From assembly GCA_009103225.1 (NCBI GenBank), contig RHPI01002204.1:124001-188000 (forward strand): a stretch of 64,000 nt of DNA, read 5' to 3'. Position 1 is the first letter of the stretch, and every line of letters starts with the position of its first letter. The notes beneath the pieces were generated by a model. That model worked only from the letters and a program-made list of their open reading frames with translations, was not told where the DNA came from and searched no databases. Origin of the DNA: Chlorokybus atmophyticus. Lineage: Eukaryota > Plantae > Mesostigma and Chlorokybus algae. Below, piece after piece: positions 36,201 through 45,600 of this stretch. Both the position numbers and the translations under genes were made by a program.

Positions 36201-37372
36201 AGCAAAGAGTGTGCTTCTGCTGAATGCTCTGACCACACAGTGTTCGCTCCTGGTGTTGGTGGTGGTGCCTTCGGATCAACGTACTTCCACACCTTCTTGT
36301 GGATGAGCAAGGCCTTCATCTCCACGCACCATGTGTTGTAGTTGTCGGTGTCCAGCTTTGCAATCTGCCCCTTGTCGTAGGTCGCCTCCATTTCTGTCGA
36401 GCCCGCCTTTCTTGCAGTTGACACCCAAGGCTCTGCTACCAACAAGCTACCGTAGTGTAGAATTACTATGCACACAAGCTAGTCTCACACTCTCTAAGCG
36501 TAGTGTGGGCCCATAACCTGTTGAAGGACTAGCATGCACATGTAGTTGGGGCAAGCATAGACACACACGGACAGAGCTACCGCCACCAGAGCATACACAA
36601 GTCACATCATATTCATCTATTACAAGTTGTCCGCTGGTTCTTATACCGGCCAGTTACACACACGTCTACGTTTGCAAGCACTGCGTAAGCTATACTCAGC
36701 CTTTTGACGCGCTCTAAGCTGTGTTGTCTTTCTTACAACCAGAGCTTTCCAACAAGCTCTTACACGCCTAATATGAGTAAGTATACGCGGAGATACGAAG
36801 CAGTTAGTAAGGCTCCAGTCTGGAGTCCGGAGTCTGGTCCGACGATGCCATCTTGCTAAGTCCGGACCTAGTGCTCGTCCTTACGACCTTCTACTCATGT
36901 GTGGAGGGTCGATGCTGATCGTATGTAGGAATACTCTCAACAACTCCGGACTCCAGACTGGAGCCTTACTAACTGCTTCGTATCTCCGCGTATACTTACT
37001 CATATTAGGCGTGTAAGAGCTTGTTGGAAAGCTCTGGTTGTAAGAAAGACAACACAGCTTAGAGCGCGTAAAAAGGCTAAGTATAGCTTACGCAGTGCTT
37101 GCAAACGTAGACGTGTGTGTAACTGGCTGGTATAAGAACCAACGGACAACTTGTAATAGATGAATGTGATGTGACTTGTGTATGCTCTGGTGGCGGTAGC
37201 TCTGTCTCTGTGCATCTATGCTTGCCCCAACTACATGTGCATGCTAGTCCTTCAACAGGAGTCTGGTCCGACGACGCCATCTTGCTAAGTCCGGACCTAG
37301 TGCTCGTCCTTACGACCTTCTACTCCTGTGTGGAGGGTCGATGCTGATCGTATGTAAGAATGACTCTCAACA
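33230..37372 (-). mobile_element. Copia A4: RT deleted, rearranged right end
   Basis: TSD CCGAG at 33225-33229 and 37373-37377. LTRs 33230-33653 and 36519-36942. PBS 36507-36518. RNase H is joined at ~34119 to the integrase-RT linker. Inverted LTR piece 36943-37257 plus LTR tail 37258-37372. Confidence 0.95.
34229..36391 (-). pseudogene. gag-pol: A4 gag-protease-integrase ORF, frameshifted near 34275
   Basis: Same motifs as A3. An extra A in ggaaaaacc shifts the frame after SREVVF. Confidence 0.9.
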
Positions 37373-37576: not shown

Positions 37577-39373
37577 CACGGGCTCCGAGCTCCTTGTGAC
37601 AGCAACCTTCTGTGCCTCCTCCTTGTGTCTGACCTTGTGATGTCTTAAACGCTGTCTTCTCGACCACCCTTGTCTTTGCAACAACCTTGTGCGCACCGTC
37701 CTCCTCCACATAGTAGAGTCCACCCCTGTTGTTGCCTACTACATGCGTGACACCGCCAAGCTTTATACGAGCCTTGTCCGCATCAAACACAGCCGTTGCA
37801 CCAACAATCGTGGCTCTACGTACTGAGAACAAACTAGCACATGCACCTGGCACATACAGTACATCCCTAAGCACAGCCTCCTTCACCATACAACCAACCT
37901 TGCACCTCAAATTAGCATCTCCCTTTGCAACAGCTTCCAGCATCTGCCGGTTCCCAAAATCCACCGTAACTGGCTCAGTCAAAGGAGTGAGGTTGGCGAG
38001 CTTGTTCCTATCGCTTGTGAGATGCCTGTTCGCTCCCGTGTCCAGCACCCACCCAGGATACTCCGCTCCCTCATCCGATGCATGGAAAGCAACCGCTCAA
38101 TGCTCACCATCAGCCTTCTTCAACTTGGGACACTTCATCTTGATGTGACCACGCTCCCCGCAGTGCCAACACTCTACGTTGATGCCTCGAACGCCCTTCT
38201 TCACATGATGCTTCGATGATGACGTGAATGCGATAGGACCTCCAGGTGCTCCCTCTCCATTATCGTCCTCCTTCCTCAAGCATTACTCTTCTTGAAGAAG
38301 CATTGGTGTCACCCCATCCATTGACAAGTCCTCCTACTTAGACTCCAAGATAGTGACAACAACCCTGTACTCTTCGGGCAAACCTGAGAGCACATCCCAC
38401 ACCACCTCAACTTCCTTAAGCTCGTGGCCAACACCCAGCAAGTCCCTCCACAACGCCTTCGCTCGCACCATGAACTTGACAATGGGCTCCCCGCTCTCCT
38501 TGCGCAATGAGTTGAGCTCCTGCCTCAGCTGCAGTCTCCTCGCCATGTTGCGTGACTTGAAGTTGCTATCCAACTTCGTTGAAAGCTTCTTTGCACTCTT
38601 GCACTCTTTCACTAGCACCAGGTGATGATCAGCCATGTGCAAGCCTATCAAAAATGAAGCTTTTCTCCCTTGTTCTGCTTAGACACTCACTTCGCCTACA
38701 GGGATTGCCTCCGCCGAATCCACATACTTCCACAGCTCCTTGTGGGCCAGTAGTAGCTCCATCTTCACGCTTCATATGTTGTAGTTGTCAACGTCCAGTG
38801 GTTCAATTGTGAACTTCAAGCCGTCCATGTTTGTGGCCGTGGTTGCCCTCTGTTACTTGCAGACCTTACAACCTACTCCACACCAAGCAACTACAGCTAC
38901 TCACACAATTGTAACACACTCCATCAACCTACACAAGCATGAGTGGGCCCATAACCTGTTAACATACACACGTGCAAGTGACACGCCAACAACATCAACA
39001 CAAGAGCATGACTGCTATTGCCATTAATGCCATACAAGTCCAGGGGTTGTATACCCCGCCAGAATCTACACACGTCTACATTTGCAAGCACCGCGTGCAC
39101 AATATCCAGCCCTTCAACGCGTTTTAAGTTGTGATGTTTAGCTCACGACCAGAGCTTTTCAACAAGCTAAGCCACGCCTGTTAAGCTTACGTATCCACAA
39201 AGCTACACGGTTTCTCCCAATGCTCTACTCAGCATCTGGTCCGGAGTCCGTCCTGGCTCGACCGTCTTGCTAAGTCCGGAGTCCACGTGCTCAGCCCATA
39301 CCTTCGACTCCAAACTCTTGCGAAGAGGGCAAGTTTACCGAATACAAGCATCACCTATGTGATACCTTCAACA
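37577..39373 (-). mobile_element. Copia C2, second gag-protease element, cut at the CACTA right end; only the 5' LTR (38957-39373) present
   Basis: 417-bp C-type LTR, PBS 38945-38956, decayed gag and WVLDTGANRHL protease. Collinear with C1 up to RSSEPV. Confidence 0.92.
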
Positions 39374-39567
39374 CACGAAGCTGGATGTGACGAGCGACAC
39401 AAAGTGTATCGCTCTGGAATGGGAAAAGCGTCGAGGGGCCACATCTTGATGTCGTGACTCTGGAGCAAGTAAAAGGCATTGTCCAGCTGCTCCCCATATT
39501 TGACAAGGACAGCGCCCGTGTACAAGAGGGCAAGTATTGGGTGAACGTTCACTGCACTTCCACGTGA
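39374..39567 (+). pseudogene. C-terminal fragment of a probable Plavaka/CACTA-type transposase
   Basis: TKCIALEWEKRRG/PHLDVVTLEQVKGIVQLLPIFDK..KYWVNVH (one frameshift) resembles the DVI..I...V.L.P.F....Y.VN tail recalled for these transposases. Short, so tentative. Confidence 0.45.
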
Positions 39568-39770
39568 CACATGTACTTGTCTCACTACTCAAAGTTTGGA
39601 GCATATCAGTCAGGTAGGCATTGCTAATCGTATGCTAAGATTTTTGCATGTGGACGTGTACAATACCGGGCAGCTGTTACTGCACAACTATCACCACAAT
39701 CGAATGTGCCATGCAACATTCAACAATCAGTCCGCCGTGTGGCATTAAGCATCAATACAGTGCACCACAC

Positions 39771-41446
39771 TCAAGCCTCATAGTTCCATGATACAGGAGG
39801 GTAGTCACATCGCATATCCATTGTTTCAAGCATGAGACGCCCTATGCACTCCGCCATTGCGGGAGGAACTGCATTCGCTATGGTAATGGCCGAGGTCATC
39901 CATGGCACTCCCAGCGCTGTTTGCCACGCAGCAATGCCGCCCCTGGTGCTTGGAAGGCCATAGACCGGGTACATTTGCTGTGGCGCGTTTGATGTCACGA
40001 TTGCCTTCTTCGCGCTAGCGGACAGATGCGACGATAGCAGTCTAATTGCCTTGCCCGCGTGCGAGCAGCGTGCTGGTGGGGTAGCTACTACTGGCTGTGT
40101 CTGAAACAGACGGTGTCGGAAAGTTGATAGGCTAAACATCGTGCCACAAAGGGACAGGTTGGGTCTGAATGAGGAAGCTGCTCCTGGCACATTCTCAATC
40201 ACAAACTTGACCTAGCTTGCAAGCAGCAGACATCGGACGAGCGGTATCATATCCTGGTGTCTCCAGGATGTGCCATGTGCCGCCCGTTGAGGTGCCGGGA
40301 TGGCACTTGAATAGGCCTGGCATGATGGACTGGCCCAGATGAGCTCGTACTCGCTCAGCTCTCCTGCACTCAGGGTGCATACATCGCGGTGTATGAAGGG
40401 CAGCGGGTATTTAGAGGAGGGACTTATGTCCATCCTGGTCACGTCAAAGCCTGCGTGGTATAGACCGACACCGGCACCGCCATCGCCGCAGAATAGGTCG
40501 AATGCCCTTGGTCTGCGTGTGCGTCCAAGCTTGTTGTCAAATGGCATGCATGTGGTCAAGGCTGGCCGTGGTGCTGGCCAGGGACTAACAATGATGCCGT
40601 CCGGGCTTACTTTGCGACTAACGTTCTCCCCTCCGACGCGCAGAACATGGCGTGCCCCGTCAACTGATGTGTACGCGAATACGTTGTGCCCTTTGAAGTT
40701 GATGGTTTGTGGTCGATCACCGTCATCGAGTACTATACGGTGCTGCCCTGCAAAGACATTTTCCATTGCACCATGCATATATGGTGCGTCCTCAATCTCG
40801 CACGCCACGAAGCGATGCTGACCTGACGCTTGCTTGAATGATTCTACAACGCCCGCATGCCATTCCCCATCCAGCGGCCAATGCACCATGACATTCACAC
40901 CGATCAGCTGCTCGCATCCCAACTTAACTGCGCAGCCGATGCAGTGCGCTGTCCAACGATCGATGGTCTGCCTCTTATATAGCGGCCAGGGGATGGAACT
41001 GCCAACGCCCACACCGTGGAAGACTGCTCTGAATGCGACAACAGCTTCAACATGCATGAAATAAGCATACGCCCAACATAACATGCAGTGATACGTCGCG
41101 GTCCACTCTGCCGAATTACCTCCATAGCATCCACCACCTGTCCACTAACCACATGTCCTGGTGTTGTCCATGTGAAGAAGCGCATGGGTTCCCCTCGCCA
41201 CTCGAAGCACGAGCGCGAGCACGATTTGCACACGCACTGCACGCAATGGAAAAACTCGGGTTCCTTGCACAGCACTTGGCCGAGGCGGCAGCCAAACACG
41301 TCGACATTGTGTGTGGTGTGATGCCAGCAAGTAGCAGTAAAACCGTGGCACACTGTCTGCACTCGCTGACATTCGGTCAAGTGTGCTCGCGTTTGCTGCC
41401 TACGGCCATTAGCACATACGTACGCATTGCATTGTGGGCACACCAA
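39771..41446 (-). pseudogene. Cys-rich + Tudor + phage-type C5 DNA cytosine methyltransferase; one in-frame TAG at 40212-40214
   Basis: Motif I FDLFCGDGG (~40476-40503), IHRDV, motif IV WASPSCQAYS, VI FVIENV, VIII FRHRLF, X IANAVPPAMAECIG. Tudor LIGVNVMVHWPLDGEWHAGVVESF..GQHRIVLDDGD, split by a 75-bp GT..AG intron at 40748-40822. The 5' exon structure is uncertain. Confidence 0.88.
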
Positions 41447-42064
41447 GCATGTCTCCTGGGTGAGGGGGATTCAACTGCTGCCCCCGACATCATGCAAGAA
41501 TCGGCACCACTGCCCATAAACTGAGCGAGACTTTAGGGTATGGGCATTAATTTATGGTTTCTAGCTTACAAACCCTAAGTGAGTCACACTTCAAGTGAAG
41601 CACGACTGTACCATGGACGCTATTGCAAACCCATGCATGGTACTACATCAACATGAATGGTACTCCATCTGTTAATGGTACTACAGTACAAGGATACTCG
41701 CATACTACCACGATCGTAGAGTAATACTGTGCTGTTATTCCATGGAACCCAGAGCGCTGTCCGAGTTTGTTGCTGTCAACCACGCTCTGAACCAGCGAGG
41801 TATGCAAGCCATGCATTGACTCATGCGCCGGGCGGTCATCATACACATGTACAGCCAATGCTGCTGACAACAGCAGATCCCGGGTGCACCCTGCACCATG
41901 CTGCAACTATACATGTACTTACATGGTTCACATGAAGCCAGCACAAAACTACAATACATGCACAATTGTCATCAAGACGGGGGCCAAATCACCGCCGACA
42001 CGTTGGCGTCTTGCATTAAGCGTGGCGACCAAAACGGGTGAGGTTGCTTGCAAAAGGGACACGT

Positions 42065-42521
42065 TGTTGAAGGTATTACATGGGTGATGCTTGTCTCCGG
42101 TCAGCTTGCCCTTTATACAGGAGTCGAGGGTCGAAGGTACCAGGAAGAAGCGCATGGACTCCAGACTTAGCAAGACGGTCGAGTCATGACGGACTCCGGA
42201 CCAGGCTGCTTGGTAGAGCCTTGGGAGAAATCGCGTAGCTTCGTCGATACGTAAGCTTAGCAAGCGTGGCTTAGCTTGTTGGAAAGCACTGGTTGTGAGC
42301 TAGACAGCGTAGCTTACAAAACAGCAATCGGCTGAGTACAGCGCACGCGGTGCTTGCCAATATCGACGTGTGTAGAGACTGGCGGGGTATAAAGCCCAGA
42401 CTTATTGCAATGAAGAAAAGAGGTCACAATGTAGCATGTGTGCGGATGCTATGGCGGCAGTAGCAGTCATGCTCTTGTGTTGATGTTGTTGGCGTGTCAC
42501 TTGCACGTGCGTATGTCAACA
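42065..42521 (+). mobile_element. Solo LTR of the C family (457-bp variant)
   Basis: TGTTGAAGGT...GTCAACA. TSD CACGT at 42060-42064 and 42522-42526. Confidence 0.95.
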
Positions 42522-42699
42522 CACGTTTGTAGATTCTTTAATTTATTTGCCACGGTCTTTTGATGTGCTATGATGCAGACATCGCACATCGCTTTCTTGC
42601 AACAGGGCGTCTCCCCATCCGCTGGGGGGCGTGGCTCTTCAATGCGACAAATCAGCACACATGGTGCACGCGGGTGTGCAAGCTGCCTCTACCATCAAA

Positions 42700-45600
42700 C
42701 TCTGTTATCACGTTGCAGGCGTAGCGACTCCCATCTCAATGGCGCAGCATAACGCTCCACTGCCTGCTCGATCACCTGACGCCCATCTGCCGCCATACAC
42801 CACCTGCTGGTCTTGGTGGTCTCGTCCAGCATGCGTTCATCCAGGCCCTCGATATGGCTGTCGTCACTCGTGTACTCCCCCGCATCGCCATTTTCTTCAA
42901 GCTTCTACAGAATCAGCTCGACGTGCCGTATGACATACAGCCACTGCCAGCCAAAGCATGCCAAGTACAGCTCGAATGGTTTTTCGTGCCACCCAGTATG
43001 TTTGCTCAGGTAGTGGCACACATCTCGACCCGCATCAGTCGACATCGACAGATACATCTGCTGCAGCAGGTCGAAGTTCTGCTCCGCGGATAGCTCTTGC
43101 ACATTGCCGGGTTGCTGCGGCAGCAACAACACCATTATATCGAGGACGGTGAGGGGCAACAACGTACTACGGATGGCCATATTGTGTATGGGTTCCAACC
43201 ACGGCCAATCCCCAGAGGTCTGTTTAGACCGCACGCTCCGCGTTTGCTCCCACTTATTGCATACTTTTGTCACTCACCTCGAGGCATGCCGCATGCGGTG
43301 ATGCAGCGCGTTTTGGGCGTATTATAGGGCAATAAACTCATTTGCACTACGAGTCAGCCCCTCAAAGCGTCTGCGCGTCGTTGCTTTAAGCTTAGGTTTC
43401 TCGTGCCGCACCGGCTGTCTCTCTGGACGATGCTAAGCAGCCACTTGATGCGGTAAACCCGCTTGTGCCTACTCAGGACACACAGTCAGCCCAAGTGAGG
43501 CTTCAAGGCGCTGTGCTTTTCTAACGTTGTAACGATGCCTCACCTTTCCTTTTTTGGTCCCGTCAGCGTCCTTTGTTCCAACAACCTTCTTATTCTTTTT
43601 TTTTTGTCAACCTGCACATTCTAGCATTTACTTTCCGTGGCACTGTCACTCAGAGGAGGTAAGGCGTTATCTTCTTGCTCCACAGCCTTGCGCTTGTTGG
43701 TTGCCTCCCGTTCCTCCACGACCTCATGTTGCTTCATGAGGTTAAGCATGAAGCCTTTGTCTTTTAGCGCAGCTTTCAAGACACCTCGATCAATCTCTTT
43801 ACCAACAAGACAGGCTAGGAGCAATGTGGCAAGCTTGGAGGGAGAGGGCGAGCTACAGCTGCTTCTTGATGAAGATGCCTTCGGATGGTCAGAGTGCGGT
43901 GGCAAGTGAGTCTCCGCGGCAGGAAGGGAGGGTGCTGAATTGTTACTGCGAGCATATGGTTGTGGTTGAGGGGAGGCAGGATGTGCAGAACACTCGGCTA
44001 CTTCGTACCTAGCACACGAAGTCGAGGCCTGAGGCGGTGGCGCAGCACTCAGGGTCACAGCCGGTGGTAGTGGGGAATTGGCAACACCGTTCCGCCACTC
44101 TCTCATTATATCTGTTACCTCCGGTGGCACTTCATGCATAGGCCACGACCATTGTTTGGTGCTTGCAGGCCTGAGGAGCCAAAAGTGTGCTTCTGGCTCA
44201 TGAGGAGTAGTGTTGCCCACCGACAGGACTGAGTTGGGGGCTTTTTTTATTTCCAACCCAAAGTGCGCTGCCGGGCCGTGGCACCCACTCCCCATGCTCG
44301 CGCTGAACGGTCACGCAGCCAATCAACAAGCCCAGCTTGTTGGCAAACATGGTCATCTGCAGGTGCTCGACGTACACATCTTTTCTCCGCACGATCTGTC
44401 GCTCCTTGGTCATGGCTATGTCAATGTTGCAACCGACATCAGCAAACATGGTCGCAGGCAGTTTATCGTAATACTGCGCCATTTCTCTCGCGGCACCAGT
44501 GGCTCTGCAGAAGTCTAAGATTCTGCTCGCCACGCCTGCATCGACAGCCTTAGCGGTGATTTTGCGGAGAGTGTCCCCCCTGCCGTCGTCGTTCATGGTG
44601 TCCAGCATAACCCAAAATCTGCTCGAGCTGGGGCACTTGTGATAATCGAGGACACTTTGCGCTATGGATGGCCTGGCGCGAAATACACAATGGTAGAAGC
44701 AATTACCATCCGTTGGCGCATTGAAGTGGTCCCATGAGGCGAGCTGGCCACCTAGCATGACTGATGGCCGTATGCGGGTTGCGGCCAGCTCCTCTGATGA
44801 CTCGCTGGCAGGTGGTAACCCCTGCTGCATGCGCATACAGCACTCAAATGGTGTGTCCAACCGTGGATGGCAAGAGTCACAGTGATTGATTAAGTACCTG
44901 AGTTTGGGGCAGACTGCCGGCTTCAACTTGCAGCGGGTGGGGTAAGGTAGGTGCAGAAGCCACATCGGTTGTTGCATTGTGCTGTGGTCTCACCGGTGGC
45001 GGCAAGAAGGATTGTTGCCCCGCACTCACCGGTGCTGCTCGTGGAGGAGATGGCAGTGCATGAAGGACTGGTGCCGCGGAAAGTGGTTGCGCTCTGGCTG
45101 CAAGGGGAGCAGGAGCGGCAGGTGAGACCACTTGTGCATGCAGCAAGGGGGGCTGTATACAGGACCCAGAATAAGATGGCTCACAATGTTGCAAAGGACG
45201 AATATAAGCCTATGCAGTGCCTGACGCATTGTTACCAAGGCACGAGCATAGAAGACAGCGACTTACCTCAATGGCCCGTGGGCTGCATGGAGCAGGGGAG
45301 GCCATGGGGGCTGACAAGGTGGTCTTGGGTGCACTCTCACCGCCACCCTCGATCGCAGACTCGTCACGAAGCTCGTGAGCCATGGGCACATCATGCGCCA
45401 CTGCCCCAATGGACATGTCGGGATTCAACAGGCCAACATGCATGTTAAACTGATGCTGCATTGTCGCCGCGCCCATCAGCAAGTGGAATTGAAGGACCAG
45501 TTGATGGGATTGAATCAAGGCTTGCATTGGAGCTCCACCAAGACCTAGTGCACTGTGGTGCTGTCAACCAATCACATGTGGGTTAGCTGCACGCTTGCGA

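Follow-up and report, generated by a model that had tools for sequence, protein, structure and literature searches.

The 64,000-nucleotide window analysed here (Chlorokybus atmophyticus, contig RHPI01002204.1, positions 124,001 to 188,000 of the forward strand) carries at 39771-41446, on its minus strand, a gene in which a Tudor domain of plant type precedes a compact C5 cytosine methyltransferase (MTase), and it raises the question of where this methylase came from, how it came to be joined to a putative chromatin reader and whether the gene is still intact. Most eukaryotic DNA methylases are aimed at chromatin through fused readers, such as PWWP in DNMT3 and chromo or BAH domains in CMT, and to our knowledge the origin of a reader–methylase pairing has rarely been caught in the act. 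An earlier note, made from the letters of the window alone, had proposed a horizontally acquired, bacteriophage-type MTase retargeted to chromatin by the Tudor domain. Our analysis found this interpretation largely right and refined it in three respects: the affinity of the methylase is to giant viruses and not to actinophages, the gene belongs to a repeated family, and the copy in the window is a pseudogene. We give a probability of about 0.72 to the reading that the locus is a pseudogenised member of a repeated Tudor–MTase family in a repeat-rich eukaryotic genome, with a methylase most likely derived from a giant virus.

The MTase as a whole spans 39771-40520 and is interrupted by a single in-frame TAG at 40212-40214, between motifs IV and VI. 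Frame 2 of the minus strand is open from 41084 to 40215, meets this TAG and runs on in the same frame to the stop after 39774, so that the halves on either side of the TAG share one frame. The N-terminal half (40215-40520) carries motif I (FDLFCGDGGAG, 40470-40502) and motif IV (ASPSCQ, 40317-40334), and the C-terminal half (39771-40211) carries motif VI (IENV, 40188-40199), motif VIII (RHRLF, 40104-40118), a short variable region, motif X (NAVPP, 39861-39875) and a ...DYPPVSW tail followed by the stop codon. Alignment showed that both halves are collinear with metagenome methylases of about 210 amino acids and that the C5-MTase motifs stand in canonical order. Motif I (FxGxG, for S-adenosylmethionine (SAM) binding) aligns to DLFCGAGGA, with Asp in the window gene where relatives have Gly. 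Motif IV keeps the catalytic Cys, preceded by Ser (codon 40323-40325) in place of Pro (SPSCQ); the close relative P0125 reads SPQCH, with Gln at this position. Motifs VI (ENV), VIII (RxR) and X were likewise aligned and collinear.

Judged by sequence comparison, the match with the C5-MTase family is far beyond chance. The N-terminal half matched C5-MTases of about 210 amino acids with E-values down to 1.5e-18 among 5.8e9 proteins, and its best E-value in an exhaustive phmmer search of 1.84 billion representatives was 8.7e-28. BLASTP aligned the C-terminal half to P0125 in two blocks (E-values 1e-15 and 3e-14) on either side of a methyl-CpG-binding domain (MBD) inserted in that protein, and all 11 of the aligned homologues matched PF00145 (best E-value 5e-9). 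The gene with every C5-MTase motif in order and one in-frame TAG, as first described from the letters, was thus recovered in full.

To place the methylase among its relatives, we compared it with phage, viral and eukaryotic enzymes. Matches were found in 290 of 50,697 phage records at 39-43% identity, and 255 of the 290 came from phages of Actinobacteria (phages of Mycobacterium, Streptomyces, Arthrobacter, Gordonia or Rhodococcus). The proposed actinophage affinity therefore stands at the level of the family, but it does not extend to the nearest relatives. The closest proteins in the exhaustive search were P0123-P0126, which share with the window MTase an HG..W.H..LIP segment and the ...DYPP tail. 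In a quick maximum-likelihood tree of 70 rows with SH-aLRT (approximate likelihood-ratio test) support, the window MTase fell in a seven-row clade (SH-aLRT 98) together with P0123, P0125, P0154, P0173, P0185 and the gene on contig L005, and the actinophage enzymes formed a separate clade.

Three of the contigs in this clade look like giant-virus contigs from their gene content. L005 carries topoisomerase II, mRNA triphosphatase, kinases, a TBP-like gene and YqaJ; L011 carries a single-ORF (open reading frame) Rpb1 and Skp1; and L012 carries an mRNA cap N7 methyltransferase. Single-protein scans of the viral contigs gave one locus each. As the supported monophyly indicates, the window MTase belongs with this giant-virus clade of compact C5-MTases. 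Three of the relatives in the clade have an MBD placed between motif VIII and motifs IX-X, which is absent from the window gene. This arrangement is itself worth recording: giant-virus-like contigs (L005:9239-10534, also L006) encode a compact C5 methylase with an inserted MBD (PF01429), as seen also in the proteins P0123 and P0125, and such a protein would both write a mark and carry the reader for it; on L005 the gene was called in two pieces.

A profile of the family searched against the PDB gave its best matches with bacterial methylases (3g7u, E-value 7e-9, and M.HaeIII), followed by DNMT2 at about 1e-4; DNMT1 was matched at motif I only, and no DNMT3, DRM or CMT match was found in this search. 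Among the best 150 of 2203 matches in the exhaustive search, all were small or virus/phage-type proteins. Because the profile fits bacterial methylases best, reaches DNMT1 at motif I only and leaves DNMT3 unmatched, the window MTase is placed by homology outside the classical eukaryotic families (DNMT1, DNMT2, DNMT3), which agrees with its initial separation from DNMT1, DNMT3, CMT and DRM. ChloroDNMT has been described with a PWWP domain, not a Tudor domain.

The Tudor domain (40676-40919) is of the RDM15/PDS5C type. It lies in the frame of motif I, some 70 codons before it, and is joined to the MTase by an open linker of about 50 codons (40521-40675). It is split by a 75-nt GT..AG segment at 40748-40822 (donor CAG|GTCAGC, acceptor TTTGCAG|G), a candidate spliceosomal intron that is in frame and stop-free. 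When the 75 nt were removed, the domain matched PDB 7de9_A with an E-value of 2.6e-8 (36.8 bits), ungapped over 43 residues across the junction and through the (Y/F)DDGD strand; when they were retained, the match was only 7.8e-4 (22 bits) and the alignment ended exactly at the GT. The claim that removal of the segment yields a Tudor domain directly upstream of the MTase is upheld by this comparison, and homology alone makes the segment a candidate intron; since it is in frame and stop-free, it could also be translated. The segment is bounded by the near-repeat CAGG(T/G)CAGCA(T/C)CG(C/T), which encodes GQHR twice and would fit intron gain through a small tandem duplication.

The structure 7DE9 is the Arabidopsis RDM15 Tudor domain bound to histone H3 monomethylated at Lys4 (H3K4me1) (PMC8184781). 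In RDM15, Trp616, Tyr623 and Tyr641 form the aromatic cage, the Asp643/Asp645 pair selects the monomethyl state and Glu647 holds H3R2 (PMC8184781). In the window copy the Trp is kept, but the other two cage positions are His and Leu, so that the aromatic cage is incomplete; both Asp residues (DDGD) are conserved, and the position of Glu647 aligns with Pro.

Contigs from three public runs (X1, X2 and X3) revealed further copies of the unit, about 97% identical to that in the window. In run X3, up to nine different contigs covered one place, many of them only 90-95% alike; since several variants occur per place, the Tudor–MTase unit is a repeated family. A single 2.5-kb contig of run X1 spans 39373-41109 and contains no indel within 39771-40925. 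The residue comparisons that follow rest on 40 of the 138 differences between the window and the other copies, those being the ones listed. Among them, base 40214 is G in the other copies, which changes the TAG to CAG (Gln); the Asp of motif I is Gly and the Phe before DLF is Leu, both matching the family consensus; and the altered cage positions of the Tudor domain are Tyr (at 40859) and Phe (at 40730). Upstream of the Tudor domain, at 40930-40931, copies in all three runs have 5 extra nt, which shifts the frame. The other copies are therefore better preserved than that in the window.

The differences are also strongly one-sided. Among transitions, the window has A/T against G/C in 58 of 75 cases (p 2e-6), and the listed coding differences comprise 18 nonsynonymous and 8 synonymous changes, close to the neutral expectation of about 2.6:1. 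Of the 24 listed sites, 10 are in a CHG context, where 19% would be expected (p about 0.01); the sample is small and selected. The TAG, the Gly-to-Asp change in motif I, the Ser before the catalytic Cys, the change of two of the three cage residues, the 5-nt indel and two adjoining long terminal repeat (LTR) insertions lead us to conclude that the window copy is a pseudogene that cannot make the protein. It had been suspected of being dead from the TAG and the Ser alone; the suspicion proved correct and now rests on more changes, but the Ser, although present, is a weaker sign of death than had been thought and by itself proves little, because the close relative P0125 has Gln there. Likewise, a foreign-type MTase is indeed joined to a Tudor domain, but it is not a lone acquired gene: the window holds one decayed member of a repeated family. 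The interest of the locus thus lies in the gene family, and what this copy itself contributes is evidence of decay of the family through C-to-T mutation, apparently in excess at CHG sites.

No match that covers the Tudor part was found among the best 150 of the 2203 matches in the exhaustive search of 1.84 billion proteins, and those of the 150 that aligned in two stretches were tandem methylases only. We also found no paper describing a Tudor domain fused to a compact C5-MTase of this type. The compact C5-MTases of phages and giant viruses (about 210 amino acids) resemble the window gene in the order and spacing of their motifs, at 40-50% identity, and the giant-virus subclade with the inserted MBD shares its C-terminal ...DYPP tail. 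Unlike the window gene, the viral enzymes stand alone or bear the MBD between motif VIII and motifs IX-X, whereas the window gene has no MBD and combines an N-terminal Tudor domain with a candidate intron and a eukaryotic repeat context. A broader parallel is N4CMT of bdelloid rotifers, a bacterial N4-cytosine methylase fused to a chromodomain (cited in PMC12344493). Both are horizontally acquired methylases of prokaryotic type joined to a eukaryotic reader of histone marks; however, N4CMT makes N4-methylcytosine (4mC) and is not a C5 enzyme, its reader is a chromodomain, its donor was different and it is a single host gene, so the likeness is one of analogy and not of membership.

With the Arabidopsis RDM15 (PDS5C) Tudor domain, the window gene shares the residues equivalent to Trp616 and Asp643/Asp645; at the positions of 623 and 641, Tyr and Phe are found in the other copies. 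RDM15 differs in that its Tudor domain is C-terminal in a protein resembling a cohesin regulator and only recruits the methylation machinery, whereas in the window gene the Tudor domain is fused directly to the methylase, with Pro for Glu647 and His and Leu in the cage. A 2025 survey reported virus-derived 'orphan' DNMTs, generally without companion domains, in many eukaryotes, and lists six of them for Klebsormidium nitens (PMC12344493, Table S1). The window family is like these in being a lineage-restricted DNMT, probably outside DNMT1-6, with giant-virus relatives and in lying in methylated, repeat-rich DNA, but unlike them it has a Tudor companion. Retrotransposon-encoded DNMTs (SymbioLINE-Dnmt, SymbioDIRS-Dnmt3 and KnitGypsy-Dnmt3; PMC5890265) are likewise multicopy, repeat-associated cytosine methylase genes of algae. 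They are of DNMT3 or other types, lie within a retrotransposon polyprotein and have no Tudor domain, whereas the window gene is a separate, candidate-spliced gene of viral type for which no carrier element was found in the window.

Could the locus instead be the debris of an integrated giant virus, with the methylase as viral junk and the Tudor-like segment as unrelated host or chance sequence, so that no fusion protein ever existed? The nearest methylase relatives do lie on giant-virus-like contigs, and the endogenisation of giant viruses, as well as companion-less viral 'orphan' DNMTs, has been reported in eukaryotes including streptophyte algae (PMC11244446, PMC12344493). We nevertheless regard this explanation as unlikely, since about 50 codons of open linker connect the Tudor domain to the methylase in a single frame and the same arrangement recurs on the contigs of other copies. 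The Tudor domain is, moreover, of plant type and contiguous only once the GT..AG segment is removed, and Pfam searches of the flanking ORFs revealed no other viral hallmark gene nearby. The opposite view, that the gene in the window is still functional, would require tolerance of Ser before Cys and, for the TAG, an error of the assembly, a polymorphism of the strain or translational read-through. It can appeal to the CAG that other copies have at the TAG codon and to the Gln of P0125, but it is highly improbable against the Gly-to-Asp change in SAM-binding motif I, the loss of two of three cage residues, the one-sided excess of C-to-T type differences, the neutral-looking nonsynonymous-to-synonymous ratio and the position of the gene between two LTR insertions. 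Furthermore, no contig from runs X1-X3 was seen to carry the version of the gene found in the window.

Several observations weigh against our preferred reading of a decayed Tudor–MTase family member. The window MTase pieces fall under the Pfam threshold (PF00145, E-value 0.15, 11.9 bits against a cut-off of 22) and under that of NCBIfam TIGR00675 (11.1 against 100.65), and PTM_DIR17_Tudor on the window Tudor domain is also below threshold (E-value 0.0076, 16.5 bits against 27.2). An AlphaFold single-sequence model of 40215-40934 was unusable (predicted local distance difference test score, pLDDT, 30). No RNA support was found for any intron or for a single transcript: none of the listed RNA runs proved to contain the stretch, and no splice joint was found in the contigs of runs X1-X3. 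Within the 40 listed differences, neither a fully open copy nor Pro before the catalytic Cys of other copies was confirmed, and the Tyr and Phe of the other copies differ from the window residues by C/T changes, which could reflect decay in those copies. The giant-virus origin is based on the gene content of metagenomic contigs and on a quick tree that does not include the reference DNMT families. Finally, the window yielded neither a transposase nor the terminal repeats or target duplication of a carrier element; such a search has incomplete reach here because a Copia insertion interrupts the unit at 39373.

Under the preferred reading, the protein of the family would have three parts: an N-terminal Cys/His-rich region, the RDM15/PDS5C-type Tudor domain and a compact C5-MTase of about 250 amino acids. 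Its methylase core belongs to a family of small methylases that is common in phages; since the nearest relatives of this core lie on giant-virus-like contigs, a giant virus is the most likely source from which the host received it. It would then have acquired a Tudor exon of host origin and one intron or more. In intact copies, presumably spliced, the Tudor cage (Trp/Tyr/Phe with Asp-x-Asp) may dock on a methylated histone lysine; H3K4me1 is the best guess for this mark, by analogy with RDM15. The docked Tudor domain would tether a catalytically active methylase so that 5-methylcytosine (5mC) is written on the underlying DNA, at whatever sequence the enzyme might target, and an intact member would thus act as a reader-writer.

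It is also conceivable, although improbable, that intact members are not chromatin-guided DNA methylases at all, and that the core acts on RNA or as a DNA- or SAM-binding module and the ligand of the Tudor domain is not a histone mark. Whether an orphan DNMT acts on DNA or RNA is hard to predict (PMC12344493), the tRNA enzyme DNMT2 is among the better solved matches of the family, and Pro stands at the position of the H3R2-holding Glu647. However, the best solved matches are bacterial DNA methylases (3g7u, M.HaeIII), the MBD of the sister enzymes points to 5mC in DNA, and DNA tends to be the substrate of those DNMTs that have chromatin companion domains (PMC12344493). A stronger version of the reader-writer proposal, that intact members are active and mobile, perhaps carried by a transposon, and that an H3K4me1-type Tudor domain steers the giant-virus-derived methylase to marked chromatin such as transcribed gene bodies, is possible but doubtful. 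If it were true, such elements would shape the methylome of the host or shield the element that carries them, in a close algal relative of land plants, and they would be a C5 counterpart of rotifer N4CMT, derived from a virus and not from a bacterium. What gives the family its significance is that a methylase of probable giant-virus ancestry has been joined to a plant-type Tudor domain and multiplied in the genome, and that the Arabidopsis counterpart of this Tudor domain is a reader of H3K4me1 that feeds into RNA-directed DNA methylation. Should intact copies prove active, the wiring of a foreign writer to a host histone mark could be studied in them as a simple and testable case.

Upstream of the Tudor domain, in a different frame from the Tudor–MTase, lies a Cys/His-rich block (41120-41470, minus strand) with 14 Cys and 7 His in 117 amino acids; only 1.6% of the six-frame windows of this sequence are as rich in these residues. 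The block that had been noted here is therefore real as a matter of composition, but it has no Pfam or NCBIfam family and no homologue, and atlas leads scored at most 0.61; we did not accept it as a zinc finger. A candidate intron with the donor GAG|GTAATT, running from 41119 to 40972 or 40974 on the minus strand, would connect the Cys/His exon with the Tudor exon. GT/AG pairs of compatible phase are available whether or not the 5-nt indel is included, and this junction is a model that we infer.

The gene is flanked by Copia-derived sequence on both sides. Just downstream of it, at 38957-39373 on the minus strand, lies the 5' LTR of a Copia element (with inverted-repeat arms I2, I5, I6 and I7) whose gag and pol lie to the left. 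Contigs of other copies pass at 39373 into unrelated sequence, which shows that the Copia insertion severs the unit from its continuation; no other part of the window was found to contain this continuation. A solo Copia LTR of 457 bp (TG..CA) lies some 600 bp upstream of the gene, at 42065-42521 on the plus strand, with a 5-bp target duplication, CACGT, at 42060-42064 and 42522-42526. Runs X1, X2 and X3 all show the empty site of this LTR, as the joint 42058->42521, so this insertion is specific to the window copy. The inverted repeats around the gene were considered as possible transposon ends, a reading that we rejected because both arms are LTRs of Copia elements and one, the solo insertion, has a target duplication of its own. 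On either side of the gene, Pfam searches of ORFs (42.5-52 kb on the right, 24-33 kb on the left) gave matches to Copia gag and pol alone, and none to a transposase.

Some other features of the window were observed alongside these results. An ORF at 44198-44977, upstream of the methylase gene on the same strand (minus), contains an OTU-protease-like DGNCFYHC motif and gave no Pfam match and no homologue. Farther to the right, nine ORFs of at least 100 amino acids between 57106 and 62842 gave no Pfam match at E-values up to 0.1. At 36517-37259, two 317-nt arms, 97% complementary and 109 nt apart, form an LTR-in-LTR inverted structure, and they are related to the Copia LTRs on either side of the methylase gene. 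Copia-type elements form a nest in the left 39 kb (1-39373), with repeated LTR starts of the GTTGAAGG type, at about 2.9, 8.0, 11.9, 16.5, 19.6, 24.1, 33.2 and 36.5 kb.

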